From positions 209,691,741 through 209,755,740 of the forward strand of contig CM041465.1 of the NCBI GenBank assembly GCA_023213395.1: a stretch of DNA of 64,000 bases. Reading direction: 5' to 3'. The DNA comes from Cycas panzhihuaensis. Taxonomy: Eukaryota; Plantae; Cycadophyta. Positions within the stretch are counted from its first letter, which is position 1. Every line of letters starts with the position of its first letter. Positions 1,396-63,559 of the stretch are shown here, in pieces. The translations under genes were made by a program, and so were the position numbers. The notes under the pieces are model-generated. The model was not told the origin of the DNA and did no database searches. It was given only the letters and a program-made list of their open reading frames with translations.

Positions 1396-1405
1396 TGGTA
1401 TCAGA
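1396..1405 (+). promoter_or_regulatory. Primer binding site (tRNA-iMet) of copia A
   Basis: TGGTATCAGA, 2 nt after the LTR end; complementary to the 3' end of initiator Met tRNA. Confidence 0.9.
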
Positions 1406-3431
1406 TCTATTATTAACCCCATTTCCCCACTAGGCTTGCAGAGAGCTATTAATACCTTTCACTCACAATTCATGTGAGTTTGAGATCTTATTTAAGAATT
1501 TTATTTCGAATTAGAGAGCTTAAAATTATATTATTTTATATGTTACTATATTTGATATACGTGCAGAATTTTAGAGGTGAAAAGACTAATTTTTGAAGCC
1601 GTCTGGTTGCCAAAACAACCTCAGAAGCATTAAAGGCCTAAAATTTTATAAAAAATTTGACCATCTCAGATTTTAAAAAAATTTGATATTTATGGTCACC
1701 TAGCTAAGAGAATCATTTTTATCTTTTAGAGTATCTTTAGATTCAACCTATAACAACCATTTTTGGCTAAAATAAAAGGTTAAAATTTATGAATGAGTAA
1801 CCTATGACACCATTCTTAATAAAATCCTTTAAATATGAGCTAAAAATCTTTTTTTTTTTAGGGATCTAGTATATTTGTATCTCTGGAGCATTTCAAGATA
1901 AATCTCATCAAATTTCATCTACTAGTTAATGAGATCTTTGTAATTTTTTTATGGATACTGAATCTGCCTACTCAACCCCACAAAAAACGTTACGAGGATA
2001 TTCCAGGCAATTTTTTGTTCATTTTTAGAGATGATACAGAAGAAAAAGTTGATATACATATTAAGATGAAGCTTTTGACATACTAAAGTTTGGATTCTGA
2101 GACTATGAATATGCAAAGATTTTGCTTTTGTGCTTTTTTCAGGCAAAATCCTTTTATGCCTTTTTAGAAATCTAACTTCACTAACTTATTAGAAATAATA
2201 TTCTAAACATTTTTTTTTTTTAATCATAAATTCAAATTCTATCATTTAGGCCTCTATATTTATAATTTTAAAAAAAATTTACTAATTTATTACTATTTAT
2301 AAATTTTATTAAAAAAAATCATAAAATAGGACAAAATAACATGCATTTAGATTTAGAAAAATTAGTAATTTAGTAGTAATTTGATTTACTTTTTGACCTT
2401 TTATAGTTTTTGTATTGAAATTTCTAAAAATATATTTAGAAACATTATACTAAACTAAGGGAAACCTTGGATTGGAAGTAACATCTAGTTCTCCTACTAA
2501 ATCTAGCATGCTCTTTTGATTTTCATACATAGTATAAAGTAACAACAATAACAAAGAAAGCATGGAAGGCAATCAAGCACATTTGACATCTTTCTATTTC
2601 AGTTTTTAGTTCAAGTTATTTAGAAATAACTTGTGTTATTTCTTAAAAGGATTCTCATCTGTATGACTTATATCACCAGTTCTTGACTTGTGCACACACT
2701 TACCTTAGTTGAAATAGATCATAGTTAGCTGAAGTATAGGCCCTAAGGGAGGTGTGTGTTTCATATTAGGTCTAGTCTTAACCAAAATAATGGTAGAAGG
2801 ATAAGTTAGGCATACCTACATCCTCCAATGAGGGATAATCTTGATAACCACCCAAGAAAACTAAAAACTTTAATCAAGATTACAATATACCTAGTCTAAT
2901 ATCCATCATAGTTATAGGATATACATGTACTATTTGACTCTTTGAAGGAGGTATATAACTACTCACTGGTGAACTAGGTGAGGACTAGGAGTACTTGGGC
3001 TCCACTATGACTTGGATTTCATCATTAAGCGCAGGTGTAAGTATTGTAGATGAAGGCCCTAATACATATACTACAAGCCCCATTGGGCATCGACACCTCA
3101 ACTACTTTGGACTTGAGATAGCAGTTTAGGTTTGATTATACATGCTACATTAGACTTGGTTTTTTAGTTATATGCATCCACATGTTGGCTTCTACATGGG
3201 TATAATCTTGATTTATGATCACATGAAATATTATTTATCTTTGTGATCTTTATATTATCATTTGTACACATCATTAAACACTATTATGTTAGGAGTATTT
3301 GCCATAAGTGTTGGTGGCCTATTATCATTACTTGCTACTTAATCATATTTCTCCATGATGTGCCAGGTGTATCAGCCACACGTATCAGTGATATTTTTAT
3401 TTACTATTTCTTTTACTTTATCATCTTCACT

Positions 3432-6400
3432 ATGTCTTCTTAATTTAAGTAGAATATAAACTACATCTTAAAAGAAAAAGATAATTGGGATCTATGGTAT
3501 ATTAGAATCAAGAATACTACTAAGTATGAAGGCCTTTGGAGAGCCCATTTGCAACTTATACCTATTATTCTTATGACATCAACATCACTTGCCTATGGAG
3601 GAACACCACGTATAGCTCCAACAGATCCTATAAATAAATTATAATGGGAAATCAATAATGAGAAGATTCATATATCTATTCTATTAGTGACTGATCACTC
3701 CTTGCATAATCTAATTGATGAAGAACAATACGATACAACTTGGAAAGTCCCCGAGGTTCTTAAAAAGAATTTTGATACAAAGTCTGATCTTAAATTTGTT
3801 TATCTAGTCTTAAAGATGAATAAAATAAAGATATAGAAGGGATGTGCACATGAAACAATCAACCTTTTTCATCCAATCAAATAAGTAATAGACAAAGATT
3901 TTAAGACCCAATATATTACATGAGCATTCCTCATACAATCATGTTTATATATATCTGATTATAAGAACTTACTTGGGAGTCTTCAATCAAGTGGAATGTT
4001 GAAGACACTTAACTTCAAAGTTCTTGTAGAGAAGTTTATAGAATTTGATAAGACCTTTGATACTAATTTTACAACTTCAAATCCTCTTCCGTATGCGTCT
4101 TTTGATGTGGAAGAAGAAGTATGCTTCTCAAAGAATCAAGATCCCTCCCATGGTAGAGGAAATAACCAAGTAAGAGGTAGAGGATGAGGTAGAGGAAATT
4201 AACTATAATGGTCAATAGAACTCTCAACAATAACATTCTAGATAGTCTCAAGGCCAAGCACTAACTTTTAATGCAAGACAGTCAGGCCAAACCAGTACTT
4301 TAGGGAAAGAAATCAGATTATCATATGAGAAAGGTATAATAGGAAAAGACACCTTACAAAGGATTGTCGTATACTTACATACAATTTTCCTAAGTTTCAA
4401 CAGAAATACAAGGCTTATAATGTTGATGAAATATATGAAGAACAATTTAGTAGAACATGTTTTGCTCAAGCATACATTCAAAGACTTGAGGGAAGAACCA
4501 TTGATCAAACTAAGAGGTGTTTTAAAGCTCATTATGGCTATGCCACTTGTGATCTTGAATCACCAATGTAAACCCCTCTTGGAGTTACAAATAGCATAAT
4601 TTCAGACACCTCTTCATGGATCATGGATAAATGAGAGATATAGCATATGACCTGTAATTGAGATCTATATCTAACTTTTGATTCCAATATATATGGTGTT
4701 ATTCACATGGATGACAAATCCTAATAATAGGTTGAAGGTATTAGGAACATACACCTAAAATTCCTAGGCTTGAAAGACTTTACATTACTTGATATCCTAT
4801 ATATTTCTAATATGAAATAAAACCTACTCTCCTTATCTACTCTTGTCTCTCGTGGATTCAATCTTAGTGTTACCATAAATGACCAAACTCTTTAGGTCAT
4901 TCACCCTCCAATAAATCAAGTGGTCTTGATTGGAAACTTATTGGTAAATTATTTAAGTTGAATGACTTCCCATCTTCTGAAACTAATTGTGCTCAAAGCC
5001 CTTGTATTGATGAAGACTTTACTTTTAATACCACTTTGACACACTCTAATTTGTCCCTAGAAACTCTTTGGTATGCTCGCATGGGCCATATTCATATTAA
5101 TCAACTTAGAGATCTTTGTTATAGCCTTTTAGGTCTGACCAAGTTCTCCTCTAAGCCCTTTAAATGTGAAATATGTATAATAGCCAAATCTCATAGATAA
5201 CCCTTTACTGATAGTTAATGGAAATTGAGTCATCCTCTTCAATTGGTAAACTCTAATCTATACGGATCAATGCCATTCTATCATTGAAGCAAAACTTATA
5301 TTATATATCCTTCATTGATGATTTTACTAAGAAAATGTGGGTGGCTTTTCTAACTAGGAAATATGAGTAATTTAGTATCTTTAAAGTTTTAAAAACTTGT
5401 ACTAAAAAGGAGTCAGGTTATCAGATTAAGTATCTCTAAACATATAGTAGTGGAGAATACACCTCTACTAAGTTTGAAACTTATCTATGAGATAATGACA
5501 TCAAGTGTCATACTATAATAGTAGGCACCTCCCAACAAAATAGAGTTGTCAAGCGTATGAATAGGTCTATTATGAATATGGATCGAGCTATGCTAGTTTA
5601 TAAAAATGTACCTACTTACCTATGGGCAAAAGTAATTTAGATAGTTGTTTATTGCATGAATGCTACCATCCCAACTAAAGGAGGAACTTCTTATAATGAA
5701 AAGTGGACTAGATAGGCCCCCACTACCTACCACTTCAAAATATTTAGCTCAATATATTATGCCTATATACTAGATGGAGATAGAAATAAACTCTAGCCTA
5801 GGGTACTTAATGGCACCTTTATTAGATACCCTATAGACAAGGAAGGGTACAAGGTCTTTATATCTTCACAACAGAAGATTATCATCACTAGACATATGAT
5901 GTTTACTGAAACATAGGATCAATTATTACAATTAAACTCAAAAATATTGAACTACTATTATTATGATACTACTCAATATGATGTATAGATTCCAAAATTT
6001 GGGAGGTAAGACACTCAAGAGTTAGTTAAACTATTAGAATCTAACAATAGAGCCATGGTAGATAGTAGTTGTGACTCTAAACTAATGAGTGCACATCATG
6101 CACTACCATTCAAGAACAATAGAGTTGATAAAGGTAAAGTAATGGTAGATGGACTATGCTCCCCAGATGTGCCAACATCCTCTTTAATAAATATATAAAA
6201 TGATCCTTTTTAGGACCTAAACAAAAATCATGTAGTTGGAGAAATGAAGACCTCATTCCTAACTTAAGGTTCTCATGAAGCCTGCCAGCTAAATAAGGAT
6301 ATACAGCCTGATGAGGTAGGAAAAATTGGCACTTGAACTACCTATAGAGCCAAGATATAGGAATCACTTTTTATTGAGTTATAATTAATAGAACTACATC

Positions 6401-10400: not shown

Positions 10401-11645
10401 CTGAAAGAAGATTCACTAATAATCTAGGAAAGAAAAATAGATCCTTGATAGAACCATATTTTAAAGAAACATCTTCTATTCCTTTAACTTTTAGTTATGA
10501 GCCACTTTCAAATGAGATTTTCTCTTCAGATTTAAGGTTAGAATGATATGATGATAAGTATTCTTGGTGTCCTATCATATGATGGGGTGTACTAGAATTG
10601 AGAATCCATAAGGGTGGTTAAGAAGTTAGAGGAGAAAAAACTGATGTAGAAGTAGTTAGAGAATGGTTAGGATTGTGGGATCATTGTTGGATCCCCTTAG
10701 AAGCTTTTCAGGCTTCAAAAGTAATTATATTCTTACAAACATCAATGGTGTATTCCTTTTTATGGTAATAAGTACAACTAATGTTTTAATTAGGATTAAA
10801 ATTAACAATATTCCTTTTTGGGAATGACTGTTTAGAGGTATTATGAGATTTAGATGATCCAAAATACTTAGTGTTATGATGAGGATTATTTGGAGTAGAT
10901 GAACCTCTATATGATTTTTAGAATTTGGGATGATTATGATGATTACTTTGATAGTTATTTTTAGGTTTATTAATTAGTTTTGACTTGGAAAAAAGAGCTT
11001 ATAAAGGATCTTTAAGTTTTCCAATTTAAATCAACATTATTTGATGTTTAATTAGTTGATTTTTTAATTGATTGAAGGTAATTGGTGAATGTCCTGCTTG
11101 CTACCTAGTAGTTTTGAAAAGGTTAAAATGTTTTAGAAGTTTATTGATTATGAGAAGGATGAGTGTATTGTTGTCTTTTGTATGTGTTACAGTGATAATT
11201 TTATCATCTACTTTTGTGGAAGACTTTATGAAATTACCTAAGTCTTTTTTAATAAGTTGAAGTTTGATAAGAAGCCTTCAACTTTAGAGAAGTCTTTATA
11301 GTTTGAATAATATATTTACTATTGTAGAATGGCTAACTTCTAATTATCAACCTTATCATATTTCTCCTTAAGTGAGTTCCAGACTGTGGCTAAATCATCT
11401 ATATCAAATAAGTCCTAACTAATGTCTAGGGAAAGAGAGGTTAGGATGGTGCCTATGGCTCTATCACAATTCATCAGGTATACCATATAGGTATCTGATG
11501 TTTTGTTTGTTGATTTAATAAATTCTCTCATTACATATCACCATAGCTTTTGCTATTTTAGGTGGTGAGATATTTGTGTTTTCCAATTAGCATAATTTGA
11601 CCTAGTTAATACTTGAATTAATGCATAGGATGTAGTCCCAGACAT
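7452..11645 (-). pseudogene. copia B gag-pol, degenerate
   Basis: Gag MSGTTSYALIQVLTRSNYANWK from 11645. RT YCQLIGSLIYLTHNCLDISY (8013-8246). Ty1 RNase H ALSITEAEY...DNQGVISI...HSRIKH (7452-7832). Integrase relics at ~9400-10080. Confidence 0.92.
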
Positions 11646-13636
11646 GAGTGCTATTGTGGGATAGACCAACGAAGAGATCTTCCTTTAGGAGGCAAGAGGT
11701 GGAAGACTTTTAAATGATGTTAATTCTATTTTTACAAACAAAAATATACTTCTAAGATGAATTTGTCAATATTAAAGATAAATCCACATTAAAATGTAAT
11801 TAACATTACCACTTGGTCATAAATAAAAAATCATCTTTAACACATCAGTTTACCATTAGAAAAATAAAGATAGCTCATTCAATTTTTTATGTTTAATATT
11901 GATTAGAAAATAGAGTAAAATAAACTTATTAACATTAATATTTATAGTTAATAATAAAAAAATATTAAATTTTTGATGAATTCTAAGCAATCATATGATC
12001 ATTGCATGTATTAAAGTTTAAATTAAAACATTTGGTGGACACAAATTTATTTCACTTTAATTTTTAATTAATTGCATAAAATTATTTAAAAATCATGAAA
12101 AAATTAATGAGTTTTGTTGAATTAAAATCAAATAATGAATATTTGCTAGCTTAAGATACTAGAATTGATAAATCATATGAAAATTTTCTTAAAAATGTTA
12201 CATACCTTAGCTTACCTAGGCATGGATACAGTCATATATTTAGGTGAGGTTTTGTAAGTCAAAATAACATCCAAATGGCTTGAGTAGCTAGTCAATGCAT
12301 CTGTATCTAAAATATGAATCTAACACTCTTCTTAGAATTGAATTTAGAATTTGTATGGTGAAGTTATTAAAAAAATAGCACAGGTACCCCCTTTAAGAAA
12401 AATAATTAAAAAAAAATAATTGTATAAGGGAATAAACCCCTTTTTAAAAGTTGGATTGAGGTCACATGGGAGACTTATATGGTCAAGAGCTAGAGGAGGG
12501 GGGGGCGGGCTAAAGTGGATCCAAAATGAGAGTTTAATTTAATTTAATTTAATTAAACTTTAAAAAAATAAAAATTAAATTAAAAGGTTGAAATGGGGGG
12601 TGGGGGGGCTTAGACCCAAAACGTTTATCAATTATTATGTAATGTTTTTATATTTGTAAAAACATTACATAAAAAATGATTTATCTACATGTCTGCCTTA
12701 CTCAATTTTAGTTAGGGTTTTTTCCTTTGTTTGCAATGGTCTTCCTTTGTTTTTGTAATGATCTTCCTTCATTTTTGTAAGTTCTTCCTATGTTTACAGG
12801 TTCTGGGTGATGGCAGCATGATCTTGGTGCTTTATTCAATGATTTGGGGCATCACCCCCATCTCCTTTATGCCATTTATCTAGGTATTTGATGGCTGGTT
12901 TTTGGTCCTCGTCTCTTCCATGGTTATAGCTACTTCAGTCTAGTTGCCTGTCCTACACTCCTCCGTGGTTGTAGCTCCTTCAGTCTAGTTACTAGTCCTT
13001 GATTGAAGATAGTTCTTGGAAATCTAATAATGTTCTACTTCAACCTCTCTGGTTTGAGGTATTTGTGTGGAGTGGTATCTTTTAACATGATCTTTGTGAT
13101 TAGTGCTTTTTGCGGTTTGGTTTTCCTTGGTGGTTGTTCTCTTTCTTTCCCCTATTTAGGGACTTTGAGAGGAGTAATGGTGTCTTTGTGCTTATTTGCA
13201 TCCCTTCATTAGATGCAACTTTTTATGTCCTGTTAACCATAATTCTTCTAATGGTTGATGGCATTTCCAAAGGTGTCTATAAGCAATGAGAGTAAGAGTA
13301 TGAGATGGCTGTGGTTGATAGATTGGTAACTGGTGGCTTCAATGTGGTTATGTTGATAACCAGAAGATTTTTTTTTTTTTTTTAAAGGTTTCCCTTAGAT
13401 TCCAATAAAAACTGCACTCCTTCTTCTTCTTTATATTTTTGTAAATCCTTGAGATGAATGGGTTTAAACCCAAAATTTGTAACTCTTTCTATTTTGTTAG
13501 TAGATGAATCCTTCTTGTTACAACATGTTGTAATGGAAAATTTGGAGTGTTGATTTGATTTTACTTAGTTTCTTTGAAACCTTCTTTTAGAAGTTCCTGT
13601 ATATAAAAAAAAATGAAATATCCTACTCTGATACCA

Positions 13637-19900: not shown

Positions 19901-20316
19901 AACTTGTGGTCTTTCAACTTATTGGTACCTATCATAGTCATTTAGCCTATTTACACTCCTTTCATAGTCAAGCTTTAACATTGTTGTCTTGCTTCTTATC
20001 TATTACAATCCAATATACTTCACATAATCAAAATATTAAAGTTGACTCTCTAGTATCTTATATTCTAGAGTACCATTACTCTTAACCTCATCACTCTAAG
20101 CTAGGGGTAATACTTCGTAATGAGTATAAACTAATTGGACACTCCATAATGAGTATAAACTAACTACTCACTCTACAATAAGAGTAAATAATAGCTCCAA
20201 AAACCCACCTACCAAAGAGCCTAAACTATGGCAGTCCCCATCATATACTTGTGATGGATGTGACTATCCCTCTAAGACCTTGTAGTCTTACTCACTCAAG
20301 AGATAGGAGATGGTTT

Positions 20317-20620
20317 CTAATGAGGTTAAACTATGGCAGCCAAGCCTTCAAAGCACTACTAGTGAGGCTAAACTATGGAAACTATCCCTCCAAAGAACTA
20401 CTAATAAAGGTCAACTATGGTAACTATCCTTTTAAAGCACTATTGATGAGGCAAAATTATGGCAACTATCCCCTTAAAGCACTACTAATGATGCTAAACT
20501 ATGGTAATTATACCTCCAAAGCACTACTAATGAGGCCAAACTATGGAAACTACCGCTTTGAAGCACCACTAATGAGGTTAAACTAGAAGAGGTTAAACTA
20601 CAACAACCATCCCCTTAAAG
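20317..20620 (+). repeat. 42-bp tandem repeat, ~6.5 copies plus a degenerate tail
   Basis: Unit approx CTAATGAGGCTAAACTATGGAAACTATCCCTTCAAAGCACTA. Related TAAACTATGG motifs at ~18225-18395 and 20222. Confidence 0.9.
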
Positions 20621-20646
20621 GTCCCATCAACATAATGGGTACTTTG

Positions 20647-20850
20647 TGTTAGAAAATATTTTGTAGTGCACATTTGTCGGCTTACAAGACTCACATTCTT
20701 ATAATTTTATTAATTGTCAGTTTCATTATACTCATAAATGTATGAGTATATAAACTCTTTTGTACATTGAATTTTACATATGGAAGTAAAGTATCTCACG
20801 ATACCATTTTTCAATACTGGAGTTTTTCGTGTGTATTGCAGATTCCAACA
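20647..20850 (+). repeat. 5' LTR of copia C
   Basis: TGTTAG...CCAACA with TATATAAA at 20747-20754. Confidence 0.96.
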
Positions 20851-21411
20851 TGGTATCAGAGTGAAGGTTCGAAGAAATTTCTACTCTACAGTGACAGTTG
20901 AAGAAGTTGTGGCCATCAAATTTGAGATCAAGTGCCATTGATCCTCTGTTTCTACCCGATCAAAGGTACTTTAGTTTTTTCGTTTCTTTTTATGTTTTTC
21001 ATTGTCTAAATCATCTATCCGCTTTCTAATTTGTTGTGTGATAATTCATATCTACTCTATCCTCCGTTCTGTTTATTTTTTTGATCACCGTGTTTTCAAA
21101 TAGCTTTATTACAGTCTGCATCAAGTTTCATTCCCATCTGTAACTGCATCACCCATGCTCATATTACACTCAGCCACCAGATGTATAAACATTTTGAACT
21201 GTATCCCTCTTCGTCTCAGCCATAGTTCTTCAGTTATTAGGTTTTTGATGGTCACCATTTCATATTGTGTTTGGTCGCCGTTCATCCTTATGCATTATCG
21301 CAGCCAGTATTTGATTGAAATCCAATCTAATTTTCAGGTAGTCTCTTCTATATCTGTAAATTCATGGATCCAAATCTCTGATGTATCTCCCACATATCTG
21401 CCTGTATATCA

Positions 21412-22101
21412 TTGTTCTTCGTAGACCGGAAACCATACAATCGTTTGATTGTCATACGCTGTAAAGAAAATCTGCTCCTTCTTAACGGAATCAGCGTATT
21501 TCTGGAAATTACAACCATCGTGACATCTCCCTTTAACATCAATTTCGAGGCTTAGAGGAGTGACATCAACAAGTTCTACATCTGTGTAATGCCCTTTCAA
21601 CACTGTGGCTTATACAGCAACATCGTATGCGATGACCTCGTCGGGATTTATACTCTTACACAGTTCCCTTTCCTCGAAGAACTCTTGAATCTTTGGAATT
21701 CGAGTGGATCCTCCTACCAAAACAACTTCATCAATTTGGTTTTTGGACATATTAGAATCCGCTAAACACTGCCTCACAGGTTCGATATACTTTTTGAAAA
21801 GATCAATGTTGAGTTCTTCAAATCTGACCCTCTAAATCTTTGAATAGAAGTCTTGCCCTTCGTAGAGGTAATCAATTTCAATAATGGTCTCTACTGCATA
21901 CAAAAGACCTCTCTTTACCCTCTCTTACGCAGTGCGTAACCTGCGAAGAGCCCTTGGATTATTGTTGATATCTATCTTGTATTTTCACTTAAATTCCTGC
22001 ATAAATGATTGACCATTCTGTTATCCAAATCCTCACCACCAAGGTGAGTATCTCCGCTAACAGCTTTAACCTCAAACAAACCCTTTCTTCATAATGACCA
22101 G
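21412..22101 (-). pseudogene. HSP70: Captured cytosolic-type HSP70 gene fragment (NBD C-half, linker, start of SBD)
   Basis: Manual minus-strand translation: [157 protein letters not shown]. Contains stops and frameshifts. Confidence 0.95.
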
Positions 22102-22598
22102 GCCTTCGTAATTAACTCTCATTCATTGCTGCTACTGTTCACGCCTCTCCTTTATCTTACGCAGCAGCCGTTATCCTTATGTATCACCATCACATCATTT
22201 TCTTAATGTTACATGGTTTTTGTCAATATTTCAACTAACACCATTCTAATACTACATACATGCAATTTAGTTATTTACTACAAAATGACATCGATTGGTA
22301 TTTAACGATTGCAATCACCATAGCGCTATTCGCGGACTCACAACATGAACCTTGATGATTGACACCTTTATCTCTTTCATGACGTTTATTTGACTCTAGT
22401 TTATCATGATTTATTTTGAAGTTTACATTTATATATATATTTTTTATTGTTTCTTGAATTATTTTTGAGATTTTTATGTTTTCTTTGTAGTAATCGAAGA
22501 TTTCGATATTTGGTATAGATTTCTCTTATCAAAAAGTTTTTTCTCAATACTTTTTTGGAAGCTTTTATTATTTTGTTAGGGTTTAAGAAACAAGGACT

Positions 22599-25500
22599 AT
22601 GGCAGCATTTCAAATTGGACAATCTCTACCAAAATTCAATGGCTCTGACTACCTATCTTGGTCAAGACAAATTCAAGTTATCTTACAATCAAAAGGTTTG
22701 TGGAATATTGTTTCTCAGGGGCTCAATCTACCTCAGCTAACTTTGTCAAATACAAAATTGACACCTGATTAAGAGTTAGAAAAGGAAGAACTTTTAAAGA
22801 AGGATAGTAATGCACTTTCACTTATATATATGTCTGTAGATGGGCAAATATTCCCATGCATATATGGAGCTTCCACCTCCCATGAAGTTTGGAACATATT
22901 AAAAACTAGTTATGAAGGGGCCATATCTCAACGACTTCAAAATCTGAGATGATGCCTTCAGATTCGATTAATGAATTCATTACCAAAATGCAAGATCTAG
23001 TCAATCAAATGGTATATTTGGGAGAATAGACATCTGAACAGAGAACGATCGAGAAAATATTAAGAAGTGTAAGTGAAATCAGTAAATTTGAAAATATTGC
23101 GACTACCATTGAAGTAACCAAGGACTTGTCTACCTTAAAGGTTGATCAATTATTGTCAATATTGCTCAACGTGGAAGAAAAATGTAAAAGCAAGGCTACA
23201 AATGAAGATTTAGATCAAGCTTTTACCTCAACTTCTAACTTAAGGATGAATCGATCTCAAGAAACAAATGTACGACAAAATCTTCAGTTCTCAAGAGGAA
23301 GGTCAAGAGGATTCAATCAAGGAAGAAGCTGGAATTCGTCAAGTACAAATCAAGGCAGAGGATGGAATTCTACAAGGTCAAGTCAAGGAAAAGGTGGAAA
23401 CCCTACAAGATCAAGTTGGAATTCTTCACCTATAGGTCGAGGTGCGTCTCAAGGAAAGGGCAGGGGTTATGGTCCTCAATGCCACCGATGTGGGAAATTT
23501 GGACATTTGGCTAGAAACTGTTATTCAATAAACACTATTATAGACATCCAAGAGAATTCTTCTAAAGGTGAGAGTTTATTCTATACTAGTTTAATGGCAA
23601 ATTATTTGACAAATGATGAATGGTTTATTGACTCCGGATGCTCAACACACATGACTTACAATACTATTTTTTTTTCAAAGATTGATAAGGATCAGAAAGG
23701 GAAAGTTATATTTGGAGATGACAATACCCAAGAAGTTCAAGGTAGGGGGACTATCTCTATTAAAACAAATGACGGAGAAAACAAGGATATTCACAATGTT
23801 TTACTTGTTCCAGGATTAAAGAAAAATCTGTTATCAGTTGGCCAAATGATGGAACAAAGATACAGGTTAGTATTTGATGATGGTGAATGCAAAATCTATG
23901 ACAAAAAAAGAAATTTTTCTTTGATTGCTAAAGGAAAAATGACTAAAGATAGATTGTTCAAATTAGCTCTATGTCCTCAAAATGTTGCCTTGAATGCTTC
24001 GGTTGATAATGATAATATTCTATGGCATCTTCGTTATGGACATTTAAATTATGGTAACCTTATCAACCTAAGAAAGAAAGGAATGGTTAGTGGTCTCACC
24101 TTTATTCAAAACAACAATGATGTTGTAAGGATGTTTTGTTAATATAATGGAGGTACCTTAAGTGTGCCGTTCGATCCTATGGAGGTGTTTTATTCTATTT
24201 GCTAATATCTTATTGTAGGTTCTATTTTCCAACATGTTTGTGAAGGATGTGTTTTTAGAAAACATCATAGGAACAACTTTCTTGAATCCAATTTTCAATC
24301 CCAAGCTCCATTAGAATTAGTTCATGTTGATTTATGTGGTCCCATGAATAATGTGTCACATGGAAAGGCAAGATATTTCATGATTTTGGTTGATGATTTC
24401 ACAAGAAATATTTGGGTTTACTTCCTTAAGGAAAAATCAGAAACATTCTTGAAATTTATAAAGTTCAGAGCTATGTCTGAAAGATAAAGTGGATTCAAAA
24501 TAAAAATCCTTCGTTCAGATAATGGGGGAGAATTTATCTCTAATGACTTTAAAAAATTTTGTAGCAAAGTCAGAATAAGAAGACAATTTACAACCCCTTA
24601 TACTCCCCAGCAAAACAAAGTAACTGAAAGAAAGATAAGGACTGCTACAGAAATGGCAAGATGTATGCTAAAAGGAAAAAAATTAAATGACTCATTTTAG
24701 GGTGAAGCAATAAATGCTATCGTGTATTTACTAAATAGAAGTCCAACTAAGGCATTGAAGGATGTGACTCTAGAGGAAGCATGGACAGGTAAGAGGCCTG
24801 ATGTAAGCAATTTAAGAGTGTTTGGTTATGTTGCTTATGCCCATATTCCTAATCAGAAAAGAACAAAATTAGAGAGCAAAAGCATTAAGTGCATCTTTAT
24901 AGGATATTCTGATGAGCAAAAAGCCTATAGACTTTATGATCCAATTGCAAAGGTTTTCTTTGTAAGCAGAGATATTATTTTTGATGAACATGGTGAATAT
25001 AAGGGTGAAGACGACAAAGGTAAAGAAATTCTGATTGAGATTGGCACCTCAGAAAAAAGGACAAATACAAATTCAATCGAAGATTCAAGCTTGAATCAAC
25101 AATAGGGACAGGATCCAAAATGGCTTACAAGAAGTCATAATCCTAAGAATATTTTGGATAATGACTTTAACAAAAGATTCACAAGATCACAAGCTAAAGT
25201 AAACTATGCTCTAATGTCTCAAGTGATGCAAAATGATGAACCTTAAACTTTTGAGGAAGCTACAAAAAGTAATGAATGGACTCAAGCAATGGAAGCAGAA
25301 CTCGATGCCATAAATCAGAATAAAACATGGGATATGGTTGAATTACCACCAGGTAAGAATGTCATTGGAACCAAATGGATATTTAAGACTAAATACAAAG
25401 CTGATGGGACTATTGACAAATATAAGGCAAGACTGGTTGCAAAGGGCTATGCTCAATAAGAAGGTATAGATTATGAAGAACCATTTGCTCCAGTTACAAA

Positions 25501-26759
25501 GATGACTACCATCAGGTGTATTGTATCTCTCGCTGTTCATCTTGGTTGGAAGATCTATCAAATGGATGCAAAATTAGCTTTCCTTAATGGTTATGTTGAT
25601 GAAGAAATTTATGTCTCTCAACCTCAAGGTTTTGAAGTTAAGGGACATGAACACTTGGTGTGTAGACTCAAAAAGGCTTTATATGGACTAAAACAAGCAC
25701 CAAGAGCTTGGTATGCAAGGATTGATAAATATCTTCAGGATAAAGGTTTTTAAAGAAGTAATTCAAATTTAAATCTTTACATAAAGACCTCCAAAGATTC
25801 TATTTTGATTGTTGCAGTGTATGTTGATGATTTAATTTACACTGGTAACGATGATGAGCTACTTCAAGAGTTTAAAGGATATATGAATTTTGAATTTGAG
25901 ATGATGGATTTAGGACAATTACATTACTTTCTTAGAATTGAAGTATGGCAAGATAAAAGTAGAATATATATGTCTCAAAGCAAATATGCTATGGATATCT
26001 TAAGGAAATTCAACATGAGCAATTGTAATTCCTGTAACACTCCCATTGAAGTTAGATTAAAGCTAAGTAAGCATGAAGAATCCACATCAGTTGACCCCAC
26101 TCTATATCGTCAGCTAATTGGAAACCTCATATATCTTACTAATACAAGACTAGATATAACATATGCTGTCAACCTAACTTCAAGGTTCATGGCAAATCTT
26201 AAGTAGGAACATTGGAATGCTGCTAAGAGAATTCTTAGGTACATTAAGGGAACAATTGATCATGGCCTTTTTTATAACTCCTTCAAACAAATGCAGCCTG
26301 ATTGGCTATTTTGATGCAGATTGGGCTAATGATATGGAAGATAGGAAATCTATCATAGGTTATGTTTTCAACATTGGCTTAGCAGCAATATCTTGGAATA
26401 CAAAGAAACAACCCACTGTGTCATTATCCACAACAGAAGCAGAATACAAGGTAGCTGAAGCAACAAGTCAAGAAGTTATTTGGATTAGAAGACTACTTGA
26501 AGATCTACATCAAAGGCAAAGTGATACTACGATTATTCATTGCGACAATCAAAGCACAATACAAATGTCGAAGAATCCAGTCTTACATGTAAGAACAAAG
26601 CATATTAAGATTAAACATCACTACATTCGAGAGCTGGTTCAAGAAGGACAGATTGAACTTGTACATTTTAGAATGGAAGATCAACTTGCAGATATATTTA
26701 CAAAGGCACTACCAAGGATCAAGCATTACAAGCTTAAGGAAGGTTTGGGAATTTTTTAA
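22599..26759 (+). pseudogene. copia C gag-pol (few stops/frameshifts)
   Basis: MAAFQIGQSLPKFNGSDYLSW. Zinc knuckle CHRCGKFGHLARNC. Protease WFIDSGCSTHM. LWHLRYGHL. Integrase LRSDNGGEF, TPQQN. RT YVDD. RNase H DADWA...STTEAEY...DNQSTI. Confidence 0.96.
24121..24234. other. 114-bp insertion in the integrase zinc-finger region of copia C
   Basis: Removing it restores NNNDVCEGCVF in frame. It has TGTTG...CAACA termini and brings in a stop codon. Confidence 0.8.
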
Positions 26760-26778
26760 AATATGCATTATGGGGGAG

Positions 26779-26982
26779 TGTTAGAAAATATCTTGTAATG
26801 CACATTTGTCAGCTTATAAGACTCACATCCTTATGATATTATTAATTGTCGATTTCATTATACTCATAAATGTATGAGTATATAAACTCTTTTGTACATT
26901 GAATTTTACATATGGAAGTAAGGTATCTCATGATACTATTTTTCAATCCTGGAGTTTTTCGTGTGTATTGTAGATTCCAACA
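26779..26982 (+). repeat. 3' LTR of copia C
   Basis: Matches the 5' LTR; followed by TSD CTTTG. Confidence 0.96.
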
Positions 26983-29049
26983 CTTTGGTATCAAGTTTGA
27001 GTTTGAAATGTAACTTCTCAAAGGGATTTCTTAAGCCCCCCTTATTCTATTTCGATGGAACTTCCTTCACCACTTTTACATGCTATAGATTCATCATCCA
27101 ATCTAGCCTTTACTTATAACATGGTAAATAAAGTCAAGACATTCAAGTTTAAACTTCATTTAGTCATATAAGTTGAGTTTCCACCATTTATCATCTTGCT
27201 TTCTACTACTAACAAGAGATTTTAGTGAAAAAGGTCCAAATGTTTCACTATAACCACCCCTTTTGGCATCACTAGGTTCATATCTTGCTTTATTTACTTA
27301 AGCTATTTACTAGTTATGGTTTGTATTCATTCAATAGATGTCACTTAGTTAGCATTTTAGTTATCAGATCTTCTTTAGTTATTGTTTGATTGTTAAAACT
27401 TTAATTAGGACATGATTATCCATTTGTCATTTTGTTTTAAGTTATGAGAGTTGAAAGATTTCCAACTAGATGATTGGATGCATGTGATTGTGATGATATT
27501 TATTTATTGATGATTGATATCATGACGTAATTTTATGTTCTTGTCTAATATGATTCATAAAATTGTTCCAAGTGTTCCCTTTTTGATCATTTCTTTTTGA
27601 ATACTATCAAGTATTATAATTGATTTTAGTCTTATTTCTATGACTTTTTGACATTTTCCCTTCATGATCTAGTCTTTATTAAAGACATTACTACTTTTAG
27701 AAGGCCTAATAAGTTAGTTCTTACATTTTCTATTTCTTTTTCTATCTTTTTTAGCCTTTTTAGTGATATCATATTTTTGGTAATAATAAAAATATGATAA
27801 CCTTCATATTTTTCGTTTTATTTGTATTATCACACTTTTAGTTGAATATTATATTTTTTATCATCATGTCTATAAATTAAGAAACAAAATATAGATTTAT
27901 CATGTATTTTGATTTGATTTCTTCTAAGATTCATAACCTGGTATTGCCCTACCTACCTTGACTAATCCATGATAATCTTACCTTCCTCTATGTAAGATTT
28001 ATTGAGAAAAGTTAGCCTAAACCATGGGCTAAAATTATGGTTTTCTTATTCGCCCTCCTCCCTCTTTTTTCCTATAAATCCCTGTATATTTTTAAAATGA
28101 AGGGAGGAGAGCATTTAGATATAATAAAGTGCTACCAAAGTTTTTCTAACACTCCTTGCTAGTGACTTGTTGTTGATCGAAGTAGATTGGAAATCATCTT
28201 CTTGGAAGCTTGTGAACTCTATTCGAAAGATTATAAGACCATATTTATCTTAATTATTTCTTAGTTCTCAAATTTACCCCTCCACCTATTTTGTAAGTCT
28301 TATTCTCTTAGTTTCCATTAATTCTTTGGCTATATTCTTCTCTCCTATAACCTCTATTATTCTCAAGTTTCTCATTCTCACGGTACTTAGATCTCTCTTT
28401 ACAACATGTTGGATAGGAATATAACATCAATCTAAGGCACATTACACTTATTTTTATCAAGTTTGAAGTATCCTTTTGTAATTCAATGTTTATTTTACTA
28501 ATTAGAGTAGTTTACTTTGGCTTAATTAAAATAAAAAGGAAAAAAAGAGGCTTTTTTCATTGTAATTTCTATTATTTTCTATCAAGGTCTGCTTGTTTCA
28601 TTTACTCATTAAGTGATATGACTTGGGGATCAAACCAATTTTGATCTCTATCTTATTTTCACATTGTTGGAAGCATTAAAAGGGGTTAGTTTAAGGGATT
28701 GAACTAATTTTAATCTATAATATTAACTACCAAAGAGCCAAATTACTTGTCTACTATTTTTCTTATTCCCATTTATAATTTATAAAGAACTTCATCCTAA
28801 CAAAGGGTTAAATAAACCAAGCCAATTCTTTGCGAAGAGCCAAGCAGTAAGAAAAGTGACTTTTGATTAATTGAGTATCCTTACCCTCTTCAATAGAGTT
28901 TTAAAGAACTCATGGAATTCACTTATTATCAAAGTTTATTCATATGCAACAGAAATGTTGTTATACATTTTCTAAAATTACTTTTTTTTTTTTTCTTTTA
29001 AATATAATAATTTAAATATAAAATGGTTTTATATCTTCGATCAATTAAC

Positions 29050-34568: not shown

Positions 34569-35149
34569 AAGTGGTATTAGACTTGAATGCCACATATAAC
34601 ACTCACAACATGTAATAAATTAGACAAGAAAATAAGTTAAAATCCTAGAGAAATAGGTTCAAGAGTGAGATAAGAGGATTTAAAATAATCACAAAAAAAG
34701 GCATGTAAAAACACTCTCCAACTCTCTTATAGGCAAGGCTTATGATATCATAAAAGAGAGAAGATCTCTCCACACTTTAATGCACACACAAGATTAAAGG
34801 TTTAAAAAATGGAGATAGAGTGGAGCATATATCAAATAATCAAGCCACTGTATTGCATGAGCATAAATAGAGTATTACAGTCAATCCATTGTTGAGAGTA
34901 TATATAACTTTCTAAACGAAGGTGGTGTCAAAAGAAACCAGGGTTTGTCACCCCAGTAAAGATATAGTTTAAGGGAGGAGGGAAATGTCCTCAACCTCTA
35001 AAACTTAAAATATAATAAAATAATGTTTAATTAAAGTAACTTTAACCTTACCTTACTTACCTTCACATGTGTGCACTCACATGTCAAATGGTGGGAGTGG
35101 GGTGACGAATATTAACCCTAACATTCTCCCCACTTAATGGTCATCACAA

Positions 35150-35825
35150 ATATCTTCATTTTTTCATGAACTTGTGGTACTTGAACTTGAAAAAAAATTT
35201 GAATGCTTGTCCTCTAGCTTTATCATCATCAACTTGCCTCATCCTTTTGGTAATGTGTATCTTTTTAACATTGAGTGGTACAAATGACATCCAAGTAGGT
35301 GCAGCTTAATTTGAATGAGAATGAATGACTGCATCTTTAACTTTATTATTTATAATCTTTGTTTTATGAGTAATGATCATGTCCAAGTGTTTCTCATAAG
35401 GTTTCTCCACCTTAAATGAAGGATAATCTTCACATGCAACAAGGCGATCGTTCATTTGATTTAAATCTTCTTCCTTAGTCTTTTCTTCACAAATAACCTA
35501 CTCTGACATCTGTCTCATATGCTTAACAATATCAAAGTTAAATTTATTTACTCCCCTATAAATATAATCTAAGGTGTTCCATATGGATTTGAAAGTTGTC
35601 ATTCCATAAACTTTAGAAAAAAACATTATCATCTATAGTGTAAAATAATATAGTTAAGGCTTTATTATCCTTTTTTATGTGCTCTTTAGTATTAAGTTCA
35701 TATCCGTTTTGTAGATATCTCCAAAGATGATTTGTGATAAAGTAAGTTTGTATTATTTTACGCCATTATTAAAAATCATGGCCATCAAATATAGGAAATC
35801 ATATTTGATTTAGATTCATTACCAT
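35150..35825 (-). pseudogene. copia gag N-terminal relic of element F
   Basis: MVMNLNQI*FPIFDGHDF**WRKIIQTYFITNHLWRYLQNGY...KKDNKALTILFYTIDDNVF...KSIWNTL, typical of a copia gag N-terminus. Confidence 0.8.
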
Positions 35826-36080
35826 TTGTATAGAAAACTTTAGTACATAATAATAAAGAAAAGAGAATTTCAAATAGATAAAACCTTAAATGATTTCAAT
35901 ACGAATACAAGTAGATAATAAAGATATTCCAAAAAGAATGTAAGCAAAGGTCAATAAGTTATCAATGATGTGGTCTTTCCAATAACTTCTAAGAAAATGA
36001 TGTAATCCCTTTAAAAATGAAATGTTCTAAAATAAAGTACACTACCAACTAGATGCTACTTTTATAAGTGCAACAAATAT

Positions 36081-36189
36081 ATGAACTTTTTAATAATGAT
36101 GAATAAAGAATGCTTTCAACAAGTGTATGAACTTTTCAACAATGATGAATAAAGAATGTTTTCAACAAGTGTATGAACTTTTGAATAAA
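36081..36189 (+). repeat. 46-bp tandem duplication (~2.3 copies)
   Basis: ATGAACTTTTCAACAATGATGAATAAAGAATGTTTTCAACAAGTGT repeated. Confidence 0.85.
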
Positions 36190-36489
36190 ACATATACCTT
36201 TAGAAGAAATCAAAAACTTAATAAATCAATGAACTTATAATGTATAATTTCAAATACACTTTGAAATAGAATGATTATATAAGCAAACTTGCAAAGTAAC
36301 TAAGATTTTTAAATATGCAAATCTCAAATAAAACTTCTTGATGATGAAGAAATAGAAAATTAATAAAATTTAAGCTTTTGATTTTTCAAATGAATAAACA
36401 CTATCTTGAGCAAGAAAATGACCAAAATTTTTAATGTAAGATGAATAATTATTACTTTGTGACCACAATGAGAATTTATGAGATAGAAA

Positions 36490-36494
<5 letters not shown>

Positions 36495-36547
<53 letters not shown>
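36495..36547. repeat. (AT)n microsatellite
   Basis: Perfect AT run. Confidence 0.98.
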
Positions 36548-36551
<4 letters not shown>

Positions 36552-38205
36552 TATTCTTTAGAAAGATGAAAAAATATAAGGAATAAACTTCCAAAATAGA
36601 GAATTGTACCTGCTTTAGTATGGAGGACCACTTAACTTGTTGCTCATCTTAGGTGTACGTGATCGATCTTCTACTACAAATTATTTTAGAAGAAACTATA
36701 TAAAAACCAAATAAAATCTTAAAACATGTATCATGAGTAATCAATAAGGTAAATAAAACTTAGTTATAAGAAAGAACTCCTTAAAGGGTTAAGAGGACAA
36801 TCCTATTAGGATAAATCAAATGCTCAACTTGATTAGATTCAAAGCTATACTAAACAATATCAACATAAGATAAGATTATACCATATTGAAGAGTAATAAA
36901 ATATCTATCCAATGGATTTGATCGTTTGGAAAATGATTTCCTGCAATTCAAGATTTTAATGCATAAGTGAAATGACCCCTTTTTGGGGCTTAACGAGAGC
37001 TAGGCGACTCAAAAGGTCATGAACTACTAATAAGATCTTATAAAATAATGTAGAAATGATCAAATATAAACTAAAGAGCTTCTTAATATACTTTGAGTCA
37101 ATAAACTTAAGAAATAATGTGTAAAAATATATAATAATGATAAACTATGAGCTTTTATGTACCTTAACTTTGTCTACTTTGAATGCCTACAAGAAAACTT
37201 CAAAACTTATAAATAAATATGTCAGTTCAAAGAGAAATGAGTTAGCTTACCAACTAAACTAATGGATTTGAAATCTAGTATTAAACAGAAAAGCTATATC
37301 AGAAATAGTAAAAGGTACTTTTTATGTTAATAACTTAAAAGCTTGAGGAAAAAAGTAATTGACTTTAACTCATTAAAATTAGGTCAAATCAGCTCCAAAG
37401 GTAGCAAATAACTAGTCTAAACTATAACCCACAAAATTCTAGACATAAAAGGATAGGTTTCATCAGAAACTAGTACCCCAGTGAAAAGATAGTACAAAAA
37501 AGAGCCAAGTACCCTATGTATTAAGGAAAAAAAAAAAAAAAAAAGAAAGTTTATAACCTTAAGATAACCCCTTTTAATAAACAAGCTATGGGTCACATGG
37601 GCTAATGTGATTGGGGGCTAACACCTTAAGGGAGCTAAAAACTTAACAAAGGAATTTAAAAATTTATAAAGAACATTTAAATTCTTTTAACTAAGGTAAT
37701 ATTGAACCAAATCTTATAATGTCAATTAAACACGAATAATGTTGTTTAACGGCTGAGGTGATTTTCAACTAACTGAATTATAGAAAAGTAGATGGCAAGG
37801 CTTCAAATCTTCATGCAGATGAGGGGTTCCAACACCTTAAGTAACAATCAATCTAAAAAGATTGAGGAAACAAGGATTTGATCATGTTAACCAATGATGA
37901 AAGCGAATAACACTAATATGCTGAATTCAAATAACAAACTACGTAGTTGAACATAGGTAAAACGATGACTAAAAGTTGATAGAATCGATCAAGCAAGATG
38001 TAGACGAAGGGGTTGATGAGGCTACCACATAGATCTGTCCATATTAAAATGGAAAGAAGGAGGACGCTAAAGGACGATGATAATGCAGAGCAAATAGAGG
38101 AGAACAATGAAGAAAAAATTGATCAATTTAATCAAAATATAGATTGAAGAGGGTGCGGGGGGGAATACCAGTAAACACTCGATTCAAAGCCAAAAAATGA
38201 GGAAA

Positions 38206-38330
<125 letters not shown>

Positions 38331-40159
38331 TTATGAAAAAAAATGTAGACGGTGGCTAACCAGAGAGCACAATAATAATATAAAGATAGAAATGATTGCT
38401 CACACTCCAAATCTAAGATGAGATAGACCCACAAGAGGCGCCCAATTAAATATAACTAGAATGTGCAATTTTTTTTTTTTAAATTTTAAGAAAAATAATA
38501 AAATAATAAAGAACCTAAGAAACACAAGCCTAAGATGATTTTGGAGGTAGGATCTCACCAATGAAGAGATAGAATCTGACAAAACTGGAGGAGTATCTTA
38601 ATATAGTTGATGGAAAGATTCTTATCAAATTTCATGACAAACAGAAGCTTATGCACAGAGAATGAAGCTCTAGATCCCAAGGAGGTTGTACGCCTTTATG
38701 GAGACTATACGGCCCAAGAAATGCTTAAAATTAGACTGAACTTGCTTGGTCTATCTTGTATTAGACCTGCACCGCTATCACACAAAAAAACTGATGAAAA
38801 AAGAAGCCAAAACAAGCAAAGAAGAGAAGGGGTAGTGGGTTTTATTGTAAAAAAAAAAGCTGAGCTTCCAGGAGGGAGATCTCTTTGTTAGAGCATCAAA
38901 AATTAAAATCGTCAAATTTAATACAGAGCTAACTCAAAGAGCTTCGAAATGACTGGTGATTTGCTAGGGTTTCATTCATTGTGGAGACTACACCAACCTG
39001 TAAAAGCATAAGTTCCTTGCCAAACCTTAAAAAAATGGTGAATAGATAATAAAATCTTATAAAATATCAAATGAAATCTCAGTATAACTTCTCCAAAAAC
39101 TTGTTGGGTTGAATATATAGCAATTATTACATAGATCTAAAAAATATTGAGTAAATAGACTAAATACACTAAAAATAGCCTAATATTTAACAAAATCTGT
39201 AAAACTTATTAATAGAAACTTTGTAAAATGATAAGATCTTAAATATTTTACTGATTGTGGCTGTGATCCTACATAAATCTATGAAAATATGGGTTATTTT
39301 GTAAATATAAATTAGAAATAATCAAATTTTTAATGAAAAATAACATAAGAAACTACTAATAAGCTTTATAGAAAATGAATAGAACTAATATTTGACTTAC
39401 TGTGAGTAGATCTACTTTAGAAACTAATGGATCTTCTTACTCTCAAAAAATGACTTCAACGGGCCAAAATCTGAGCTCTAATACTAAATCAAGAAGTTGG
39501 AACATGGATGCTTTGATACCAAACAAAGGTTTGAAAAATGGAGATAGAGCGGAGTATATATCAAATAATCAAGCCATTGCATTGCATGAGCATAAATAAA
39601 GTATTACTGTCAATCCATTGTTGAGAGCATATACAACTTTCCAAAAGAAGGTGGTGTTAAAAGACACCAAGATTTGTCACCCCAGGAAACCTCCTCAACC
39701 TCTAAAATTTAAAATATAATAAAATAATGCTTAACTAAAGTAACTTTAACCTTACCTTACTTACCTTCATACGTGTGCACTCACATGTGTAAATGGTGGG
39801 AGTGGGTGATGAACATTAACCCCAACAAAAGAGCTAACCAAAGCTCAAGAATCTACTTTAAATAAGTAATAACTTGTAAAAGTGAGCTCTAAAAAGTTCT
39901 AGATTCTATATGAACAAATGCTTATATAGACAAAATTGGCTAATAATTTTATTAAAATACTATGGTATTATATGTACATAGATTTCTCCCATAGTTTAGG
40001 ATCTCAAAATTAGTAAATTAGGAAAAAAATCTTAGATTTTAGGTGAAAATTAGTCTTAAAAAAAATGTAAATGGTTCTATGACAAATCAATGAAACATTA
40101 CAATAAGCACGTGACACAATAATATTTCAGAGAAAGTACCATGTTAGAAACTATCATAG

Positions 40160-59363: not shown

Positions 59364-59888
59364 AGTTAAAACATAATGTTTAATGTGGGTTTATTATACA
59401 CATACACTTCCCACCATTCACCTACTTCGAGATATATGAGATGCATATATGTCCATGCTATCTCTTTATTGGGATGATGTAACAACTCTTTACATTTGAT
59501 AGGCTATTTATAAGGTTATCTCACTACATATATATACACTCACCACCTGTGAACTTGAGAAAGGATAGACGAAGGAGAGAGGAGAAAGATGTAAACCTTA
59601 TGATCATAAGCAAAGTCCTAACTCCACCTTCTCTCATGGTTTTTCCTACAATGGGTTTTCCACATATATAGGTTGGTGTCCATCTTGTGGTGATGCTTAT
59701 GCTTAATGATGTTTACTTTATTTTACATTCATGTGGATTAATTCAATATGTGCACATACTCATGAGTTCATTATTATTACATTTTTCATATTAGCTCAAT
59801 ATTCCATATATATTTTATCATGGTATCAGACTGATTTTGGTACATATTTTAATATGGTATTAGAGCAATTCTAGTATAGATTTTAACA
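59364..59888 (+). repeat. 5' LTR of element E
   Basis: (A/T)GTTAAAACATAATG...TTTTAACA; matches 63023-63559. Confidence 0.9.
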
Positions 59889-62800: not shown

Positions 62801-63022
62801 ACTATATAGGTGAAGATATAAAGATATGCATAAAACACTTTATATATATTGGTTTTATATCTGTTAATGCTTGATGGAGATAAGCATATGGTTATGAGTT
62901 ATTTACAGGTTACATGTGATACTAGATACATGATACAATTATAGGTTACAAGTTCCAGCATAGAGATTAGAGACTTAAAGACTTGAGATTAAGATTCAAG
63001 GACCTTAAACATTATACGGGGG

Positions 63023-63559
63023 TGTTAAAACATAATGTTTAATGTGGGTTTATTGTACACATACACTTCCCACCATTTATATACTTTGAGATATATGAGA
63101 TACACACATATCCATACTATCTCTCTATTAGATGATGTAACAACTCTTTACATTTGATAGGTTATTCATGAGGTGATTTTACTATATATATATACACTCA
63201 CCACTTGTGAACTTGAGAAGAGATAGACAAAGGAGAGAGGAGAACTATGTAAACCTTATGATCATAAGCAAAGTCTTAACTCCACCTTCTCCTATGGTTT
63301 TCTCCACAATGGGTTTTTCACATATACTTCTTGGTGTCCATATTGTGGTGATGCTTATGTTTAATGATTTTTGCTTTATTTTGCATTCATGTTGATTAAT
63401 TCACTGTGTATATACTTATGAGTTCATTATTATTCCATCTTTCATATTATGGAATTGGACCTAATCTCAATATTCGACACATATTTTATCATAGCATTAG
63501 ACCAATTCTGGTACGTATTTTAACATGGTATTAGAGTAATTTTGGTATAAACTTTAATA
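63023..63559 (+). repeat. 3' LTR of element E
   Basis: TGTTAAAAC...CTTTAATA, followed by TSD ATTTC. Confidence 0.9.

Follow-up and report, generated by a model that had tools for sequence, protein, structure and literature searches.

Within the 64-kb window (the whole stretch of DNA that we analysed, 64,000 nucleotides long), we uncovered a dead copia retrotransposon that carries a decayed fragment of an HSP70 gene in antisense orientation between its primer-binding site (PBS) and gag. The fragment is enclosed in a leader segment with GT..AG ends, and we think it probable that this segment is spliceable, that the fragment is a passenger inside it, and that the passenger has no present HSP70 function. 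Taken by itself, the HSP70 scrap is an ordinary instance of known gene capture in an unusual slot; the new point here is the GT..AG frame around it together with a copy that lacks precisely the framed segment. The candidate leader intron is the sole part that we judge to merit further work: if the copia leaders of this genome do contain such an intron, it would explain how kilobases of foreign, ATG-rich sequence can be tolerated ahead of gag, why the cargo for the most part lies backward and why long and short leader forms coexist, and it would add to the known splicing strategy of copia elements.

The host of the fragment is a degenerate Ty1/copia element at 20647-26982 with a leader of 1.75 kb, and its parts are arranged as follows (positions are those of the window):

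20642..20646, no strand: 5′ target-site duplication CTTTG, the same 5 nt standing beside both LTRs
20647..20850, plus strand: 5′ LTR, 204 bp, TG..CA, with a TATA-like TATATAAA near 20750
20851..20862, plus strand: PBS TGGTATCAGAGT, of the initiator tRNA-Met type
20851..20965, plus strand: first part of the leader (“exon 1”), ATG-free, with the 3′ end CAAAG
20966..22579, plus strand: GT..AG-bounded segment of 1614 nt, a probable leader intron, containing the HSP70 fragment
20968..21003, plus strand: T-rich stretch in the 1614-nt segment, at whichever of its ends is nearer the PBS, i.e., the left one
21026..21411, no strand: left flank of the cargo, about 0.4 kb, without HSP70 homology
21412..22088, minus strand: HSP70 pseudogene fragment of 677 nt, from ATPase lobe II into the beginning of the substrate-binding domain, roughly amino acids 215-450
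22089..22549, no strand: right flank of the cargo, about 0.46 kb, without HSP70 homology
22580..22598, plus strand: second part of the leader (“exon 2”), abutting the gag ATG
22599..26759, plus strand: degenerate gag-pol with DUF4219, zinc knuckle, Pol_BBD protease, pre-integrase, integrase SH3 and RVT_2 domains
26770..26778, plus strand: polypurine tract ATGGGGGAG
26779..26982, plus strand: 3′ LTR, 204 bp, TG..CA
26983..26987, no strand: 3′ target-site duplication CTTTG

A prior sequence-only reading of this DNA had proposed a copia element with 204-bp LTRs and a perfect target-site duplication, and the two LTRs flanked on both sides by CTTTG bear this out. The element belongs to the Ty1/copia group by its TG..CA LTRs with a 5-bp target-site duplication, its paired PBS and polypurine tract and its domain order: from the gag ATG at 22599 the Pfam matches run DUF4219 (the N-terminal domain of copia gag), zf-CCHC, Pol_BBD, gag_pre-integrs, SH3_retrovirus and twice RVT_2, which is the order of copia, while the last ORF of the element, in the RNase H region, gave no Pfam match. 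Its PBS agrees at 11 of 12 positions with what we take to be the usual copia PBS. The LTRs are 93% alike (14 differences, 12 of them transitions; K2P 0.073), which corresponds to about 3.6% divergence per LTR, and gag-pol bears about 10 stops and 2 frameshifts, a load that fits decay since insertion. The closest proteins to the gag-protease part in a collection of 5.8 billion sequences, in which the host itself is not represented, are Ginkgo gene models at 46% identity. Comparison of the element flanks with the rest of the 64-kb window yielded no second copy of the family there, and Rfam and tRNA scans of the window returned no matches.

Two observations concern the surroundings of the insertion. 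Immediately 5′ of the 5′ LTR lies a 42-bp tandem repeat of 6-8 units (20251-20627), which translates to a 111-aa ORF with NYGNYP.KALL-like repeats and is also repeated in the read sets described below (summed depth 190-500 in the bin 20450-20648). The reconstructed target site (20636-20646 joined to 26983-26998) reads ...GGGTACTTTGGTATCAAGTTTG and includes the PBS-like word TGGTATCAAG; the element may have integrated into an older one, at its primer site or close by.

The identity of the passenger is established by profile and structure comparisons. It spans lobe II of the nucleotide-binding domain, the linker and the first strands of the substrate-binding domain, and three stop-free pieces of it each match Pfam PF00012 significantly (E 3e-9 for 207-241, 6e-24 for 295-370 and 3.6e-7 for 372-437), all three exceeding the gathering threshold of that family. 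The fragment covers only positions 207-451 of the 599 in the PF00012 profile. A read-through in which an X was placed at each break, with no repair, reached E 8e-76 over positions 246-451 of an HSP70 profile that we built from full-length HSP70s. Its closest solved relatives are the cytosolic yeast SSB1, human HSPA2 and HSC70, with BiP slightly behind; the motif NPRALRRLRTA and a second 10-residue motif are of the cytosolic HSP70 type as well. No intact HSP70 frame runs over the ATPase and substrate-binding domains. A search of a plasmid collection returned no match.

The antisense placement of HSP70 sequence between PBS and gag, likewise a claim of the prior reading, was confirmed on the minus strand at 21412-22088, with all the motifs that it had listed present and with PF00012 matching. 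Its limits of 21412-22101 held in part: significant homology begins on the left at about 21412 as given, and it ends on the right at about 22088 (possibly 22109). A by-eye impression of homology reaching out to about 20970 and about 22180 was rejected; when three full-length HSP70s were set against 20851-21414 and 22089-22598 by frameshift-tolerant protein-to-DNA alignment, with shuffles as control, the flanks scored no better than shuffled DNA. A collinear “EKHKKK” match to HSP70 in the T-rich stretch (E 0.86) was likewise discarded as an artefact of A-rich low complexity. The open stretches of both cargo flanks gave no Pfam match. The T-rich 20968-21003 is possibly a decayed antisense poly(A) tail, as far as its composition and place allow one to say.

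The fragment is considerably more damaged than the element that carries it. Its lesions comprise 4 in-frame stops, 3 frameshifts and two in-frame deletions of 4 codons (12 nt), which are located in the KIQ/EFF region and in the linker. Counting the disabling ones, there are 7 per 677 nt in the fragment versus about 12 per 4158 nt in the gag-pol of the same copy, i.e., about a 3.6-fold density; at the gag-pol rate the fragment should carry about 1.95 (Poisson P about 0.004). By this comparison, the passenger must already have been dead long before the present insertion, and by its lesion density it is without constraint. Protein comparisons, too, fit a long decay before insertion: across a collection of 1.84 billion representatives and another of 5.8 billion sequences searched by words, neither of which includes the host's proteins, identity to any protein reaches no more than 60% over 225 aa and no more than 68% over the best 73-aa piece, and the fragment is about equidistant from the cytosolic HSP70s of plants, fungi and animals. 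The two 4-codon deletions bear on the proposal in the prior reading that the donor was a divergent paralogue with a short linker. Among the proteins found in the 1.84 and 5.8 billion sequences no HSP70 shares this pair of deletions, and 2 in-frame indels out of 5 are compatible with neutral decay. Hence, the donor is indistinguishable from a canonical cytosolic HSP70, and a divergent paralogue does not appear to be needed.

We next consider whether the passenger belongs to this one copy or to its family. Logan contigs of four public runs, namely X1 and X2 (organism A), X4 (organism B) and X5 (organism C), were aligned to 20450-26400 at 80% likeness; these represent up to three related organisms, each run contains at most 27% of the words of the stretch, and the stretch turned up in no RNA run. 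The junction of the LTR and PBS with the leader is bridged by contigs over 20848-21061 in X1 (depth 61) and 20824-21051 in X2. At the junction of the left flank with the HSP70 sequence (21421), X1 contributes 6 contig variants and X2 another 3, with at least one per run spanning 65-74 nt on each side. An X5 contig over 22003-22239 bridges the HSP70 sequence and the right flank, another lies over 22106-22333 at 94% identity, and the junction of the leader with gag is bridged by an X2 contig over 22478-22797. The left flank is multi-copy in organism A, and 22003-22333 is found in organism C at 90-94% identity. Host-derived sequence is thus shared at the same junctions, all four of them, as would be seen in a retrotransposon capture, in short contigs and not in whole copies. 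As the bridging contigs are 6-18% diverged from the copy in the window, the cargo-bearing leader is evidently present in several diverged copies, and the runs that show it carry more than one organism label. At 80% likeness, part of the contigs over the conserved HSP70 sequence may stem from true HSP70 genes.

These observations point to the HSP70 fragment being an old passenger that was copied along with the element family; the sign by which the prior reading would have recognised a filler acquired after insertion, namely absence of the fragment from every other copy, is not what the contigs show. The alternative, that the piece entered a single copy post-integration by double-strand-break repair or as a nested transposon, could draw on the summed contig depth, which is far lower over the leader than over the LTR and gag-pol, although contig depth is not copy number. 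What speaks against it is that the cargo junctions are bridged in several diverged contigs which come from other samples and organisms, that the lesion density of the cargo is greater, which makes it older than the insertion, and that the cargo has neither terminal inverted repeats nor a target-site duplication, on which account we rejected the nested-transposon version. By these comparisons the one-off origin is already largely refuted, and we regard it as extremely improbable. The contig depth within gag-pol is itself uneven: the bins 24032-24230 and 25624-25822 lie far above their neighbours, with up to 130,000 summed, and they correspond to conserved integrase and RT motifs common to many copia families of these genomes.

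A more consequential alternative is that the antisense HSP70 sequence is a working regulatory module, acting through pairing with mRNA, through siRNAs or by making silencing of the element costly, and that it ties a heat-responsive copia element to the expression of a chaperone. Its orientation and its presence in several copies would suit such a role, and captured fragments as sources of siRNAs and of epigenetic conflict have been documented in maize and examined in a gymnosperm (10.1101/777037; PMC13477047; PMC13317346). The properties of this fragment argue otherwise. It is heavily decayed, and with at most 60-68% amino-acid identity long perfect matches to HSP70s of the host would be unlikely now; its lesion density shows no constraint; the element copy is itself dead; and cargo-bearing transposable elements of the gymnosperm Platycladus enjoy no methylation advantage (PMC13477047). 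The LTR (20646-20850), moreover, has no heat-shock element core of the form GAAnnTTC or TTCnnGAA, which speaks against heat induction of the ONSEN type, to which the prior reading had alluded. A present-day antisense or siRNA link to the HSP70s of the host, as had also been put forward, is at odds with the ceiling of 60% over 225 aa and 68% over 73 aa and with decay that preceded insertion. A present link between transposable element and chaperone regulation hence finds no support in what the sequence offers, and the reading as a working module strikes us as quite improbable.

The idea of costly silencing, which the prior reading had raised, is already published as an epigenetic conflict between transposable elements and the donor genes of captured fragments by Muyle et al. 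(10.1101/777037), and it has been tested in a gymnosperm (PMC13477047). That work concerned young captures and used their small-RNA and methylation data, whereas the fragment here is old and decayed. At the time of capture, the unspliced RNA of the family would have been perfectly antisense to the donor, and for this reason the conflict idea is a legitimate historical hypothesis.

We now turn to the segment that holds the cargo. The 1614-nt segment begins at the donor CAAAG/GTACTT and ends, after a U-rich tract, at the acceptor TTTTGTTAG/GG, 19 nt 5′ of the gag ATG. The donor agrees with the consensus at 7 of 9 positions, and just one other GT site in the leader scores better. In one contig of X2, 20963 is followed directly by 22578, the 3 letters AGG being common to both sides of the joint; when the cut is moved by +2, what is absent is exactly 20966-22579, with GT..AG ends. 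This segment-less contig is a single one of depth 16, its shorter side is 30 nt long, and the kind of run it comes from (DNA or RNA) is only guessed. Two features expected of a U2-type intron are thus seen, namely GT..AG ends in consensus-like contexts with a U-rich 3′ end, and a molecule without the exact intron, the latter in the one X2 contig. Among random joints, about 1-2% could by chance show both a GT..AG pair and a 3-nt microhomology. The distribution of start codons follows the same boundaries: there are no ATGs in 20851-20965, 24 in the segment and none in 22580-22598 before the gag ATG, such that the joined leader is about 134 nt long and the gag ATG is then the first ATG past the PBS. 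The plus strand of the 1614-nt segment has no AATAAA. The segment is 38.5% T, a bias that stems from the pyrimidine-rich character of the reversed coding sequence.

A second short form occurs in X4 and X5, with a joint from 21025 to 22550 and the ends CT..TA; X5 shows a further skip from 20942 to 21001 at the same depth, probably in the same contig. Since the limits of this form differ from those of the GT..AG joint, no more than one of the two can represent the ancestral empty site, and at least one must be derived. The form with canonical ends is most simply explained, on the basis of its joint, as reverse-transcribed spliced RNA, or as spliced RNA itself if the run is of RNA. Taking these lines together, we find it reasonably probable that the 1614-nt segment is spliced as a leader intron.

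It is nevertheless conceivable that the passenger is a family-level one and the segment is no intron. Then the short contig would represent either the ancestral leader, into which the foreign sequence was inserted at the AGG microhomology, or a chance deletion, and the copies with long leaders would be poorly translated and reliant on proteins of other copies. The joint is indeed seen in one contig only, its 3 common letters are compatible with microhomology-mediated joining or template switching, the donor is of moderate quality only, and the T-rich stretch starts right at the left limit, as if the foreign cDNA began there. What this reading accommodates less readily are the exact AG/GT..AG/G ends with the U-rich tract 5′ of the acceptor, the other short form, which two further read sets show with limits of its own and by which at least one short form is derived, and the fact that the long form, for all its 24 upstream ATGs, has spread to several diverged copies. 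We therefore hold it to be rather unlikely, if well worth keeping in mind.

Two further sites within the segment deserve mention. The best donor-like site of the leader, better than the one at the segment boundary, is a cryptic AAG/GTGAGT at 22040-22048 (GT at 22044) with a near-perfect 5′ splice-site consensus. On the opposite strand it belongs to the coding sequence of GDTHLGG, the best conserved motif of HSP70, and the antisense HSP70 cargo is accordingly predicted from its sequence to carry a strong cryptic donor along with it. Close to each end of the segment stands a copy of a 12-nt repeat, which we set aside as not significant in T-rich sequence.

Returning to the reading that we favor, i.e., a decayed passenger in a spliceable leader segment, we propose the following course of events. 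Long before this insertion, the 5′ leader of the subfamily would have gained about 1.5 kb of foreign sequence, including about 0.7 kb of reversed HSP70 coding region, which thereafter decayed neutrally as a non-coding passenger. The spliceosome of the host would remove the 1614-nt segment and so clear the 24 upstream ATGs from the translated RNA; the cargo would be tolerated, in this proposal, because it is located in a segment that is probably spliced out. The unspliced RNA, with its 24 upstream ATGs, would serve in a retrovirus-like manner as the packaged template of reverse transcription, and the cargo would have spread with the subfamily because it is this RNA that is packaged and copied. 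Occasional reverse transcription of spliced RNA would give rise to segment-less copies. The cargo could have entered by either of two routes: plus-strand DNA just past the PBS may have switched template onto a co-packaged host mRNA, which would yield an antisense copy, or insertion may have taken place in either orientation, followed by survival of the U-rich, antisense, intron-compatible one.

A wider version of this proposal, which we put forward only tentatively and consider rather unlikely, is that the many copia families of this genome with antisense host cDNA in the leader retain there a spliceable intron that works as a “cargo bay”. Any foreign cDNA placed in it would be absent from the translated RNA yet carried in the unspliced genomic RNA, and the antisense orientation would be favored in that the reversed coding sequence is U-rich, intron-like and without sense poly(A) signals. 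If true, such a bay would account for a pattern found across the genome and would be a new expression layout for plant Ty1/copia elements.

Several known systems offer partial parallels to the proposed arrangement. In retroviruses, a splice donor lies in the leader downstream of the PBS, and leader splicing serves the env and accessory mRNAs; in the Ogre elements of the Ty3/gypsy group, an intron separates coding regions. The candidate intron would resemble these in having a splice donor soon after the PBS, in sequence that is kept in the unspliced genomic RNA and in retrotransposed spliced copies. To our knowledge, neither the retroviral leader nor the Ogre intron serves as a store of host cDNA, and the literature that we searched holds no account of a leader intron housing host cDNA.

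Splicing is also known in plant Ty1/copia elements, where the intron is centered on the protease region and the spliced product encodes gag only, as in the shGAG RNA of EVD (PMC5580714). As in EVD and in the splicing of Drosophila copia, host GU..AG splicing would here generate the translated RNA, with the unspliced RNA being the full-length genomic form. Unlike the EVD-type intron of the protease region, the candidate intron described here is confined to the 5′ leader, ahead of gag, and encloses foreign sequence.

With respect to its content, the element is comparable to other LTR retrotransposons with captured fragments, such as maize Bs1 and those found in surveys of rice and sorghum (reviewed in PMC13317346), in which a host coding piece lies between the LTRs, is non-functional and is amplified with the element. 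Such captures are numerous, with about 400,000 captured gene fragments per gymnosperm genome and Ty1/Copia cases among them (PMC13477047). Fragment capture in those systems is attributed to template switching of the reverse transcriptase, one of the two routes proposed here. What sets the present case apart from these captures is that the cargo is antisense, sits between the PBS and gag and is contained in a GT..AG segment; the words “orientation” and “intron” are absent from the review (PMC13317346).

Two other copia elements in the window are also long-leadered:

1396 to about 3453, plus strand: leader of about 2 kb in the outer copia element, between the PBS at 1396 and a gag-like N-terminus near 3453
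13636 to about 11070, minus strand: leader of about 2.6 kb in the nested copia element, between the PBS at 13636 and a gag start estimated to lie near 11070

The open stretches of these two leaders (1396-3453 and 11070-13636) gave no Pfam match. Further LTR pairs, 86-90% alike, are found at 34796-39827 and 59365-63409, spaced 4.7 kb and 3.66 kb, respectively; these belong to short or non-autonomous elements without long ORFs and are accompanied by PBS-like words at 39521 (minus strand) and 59821 (plus strand).
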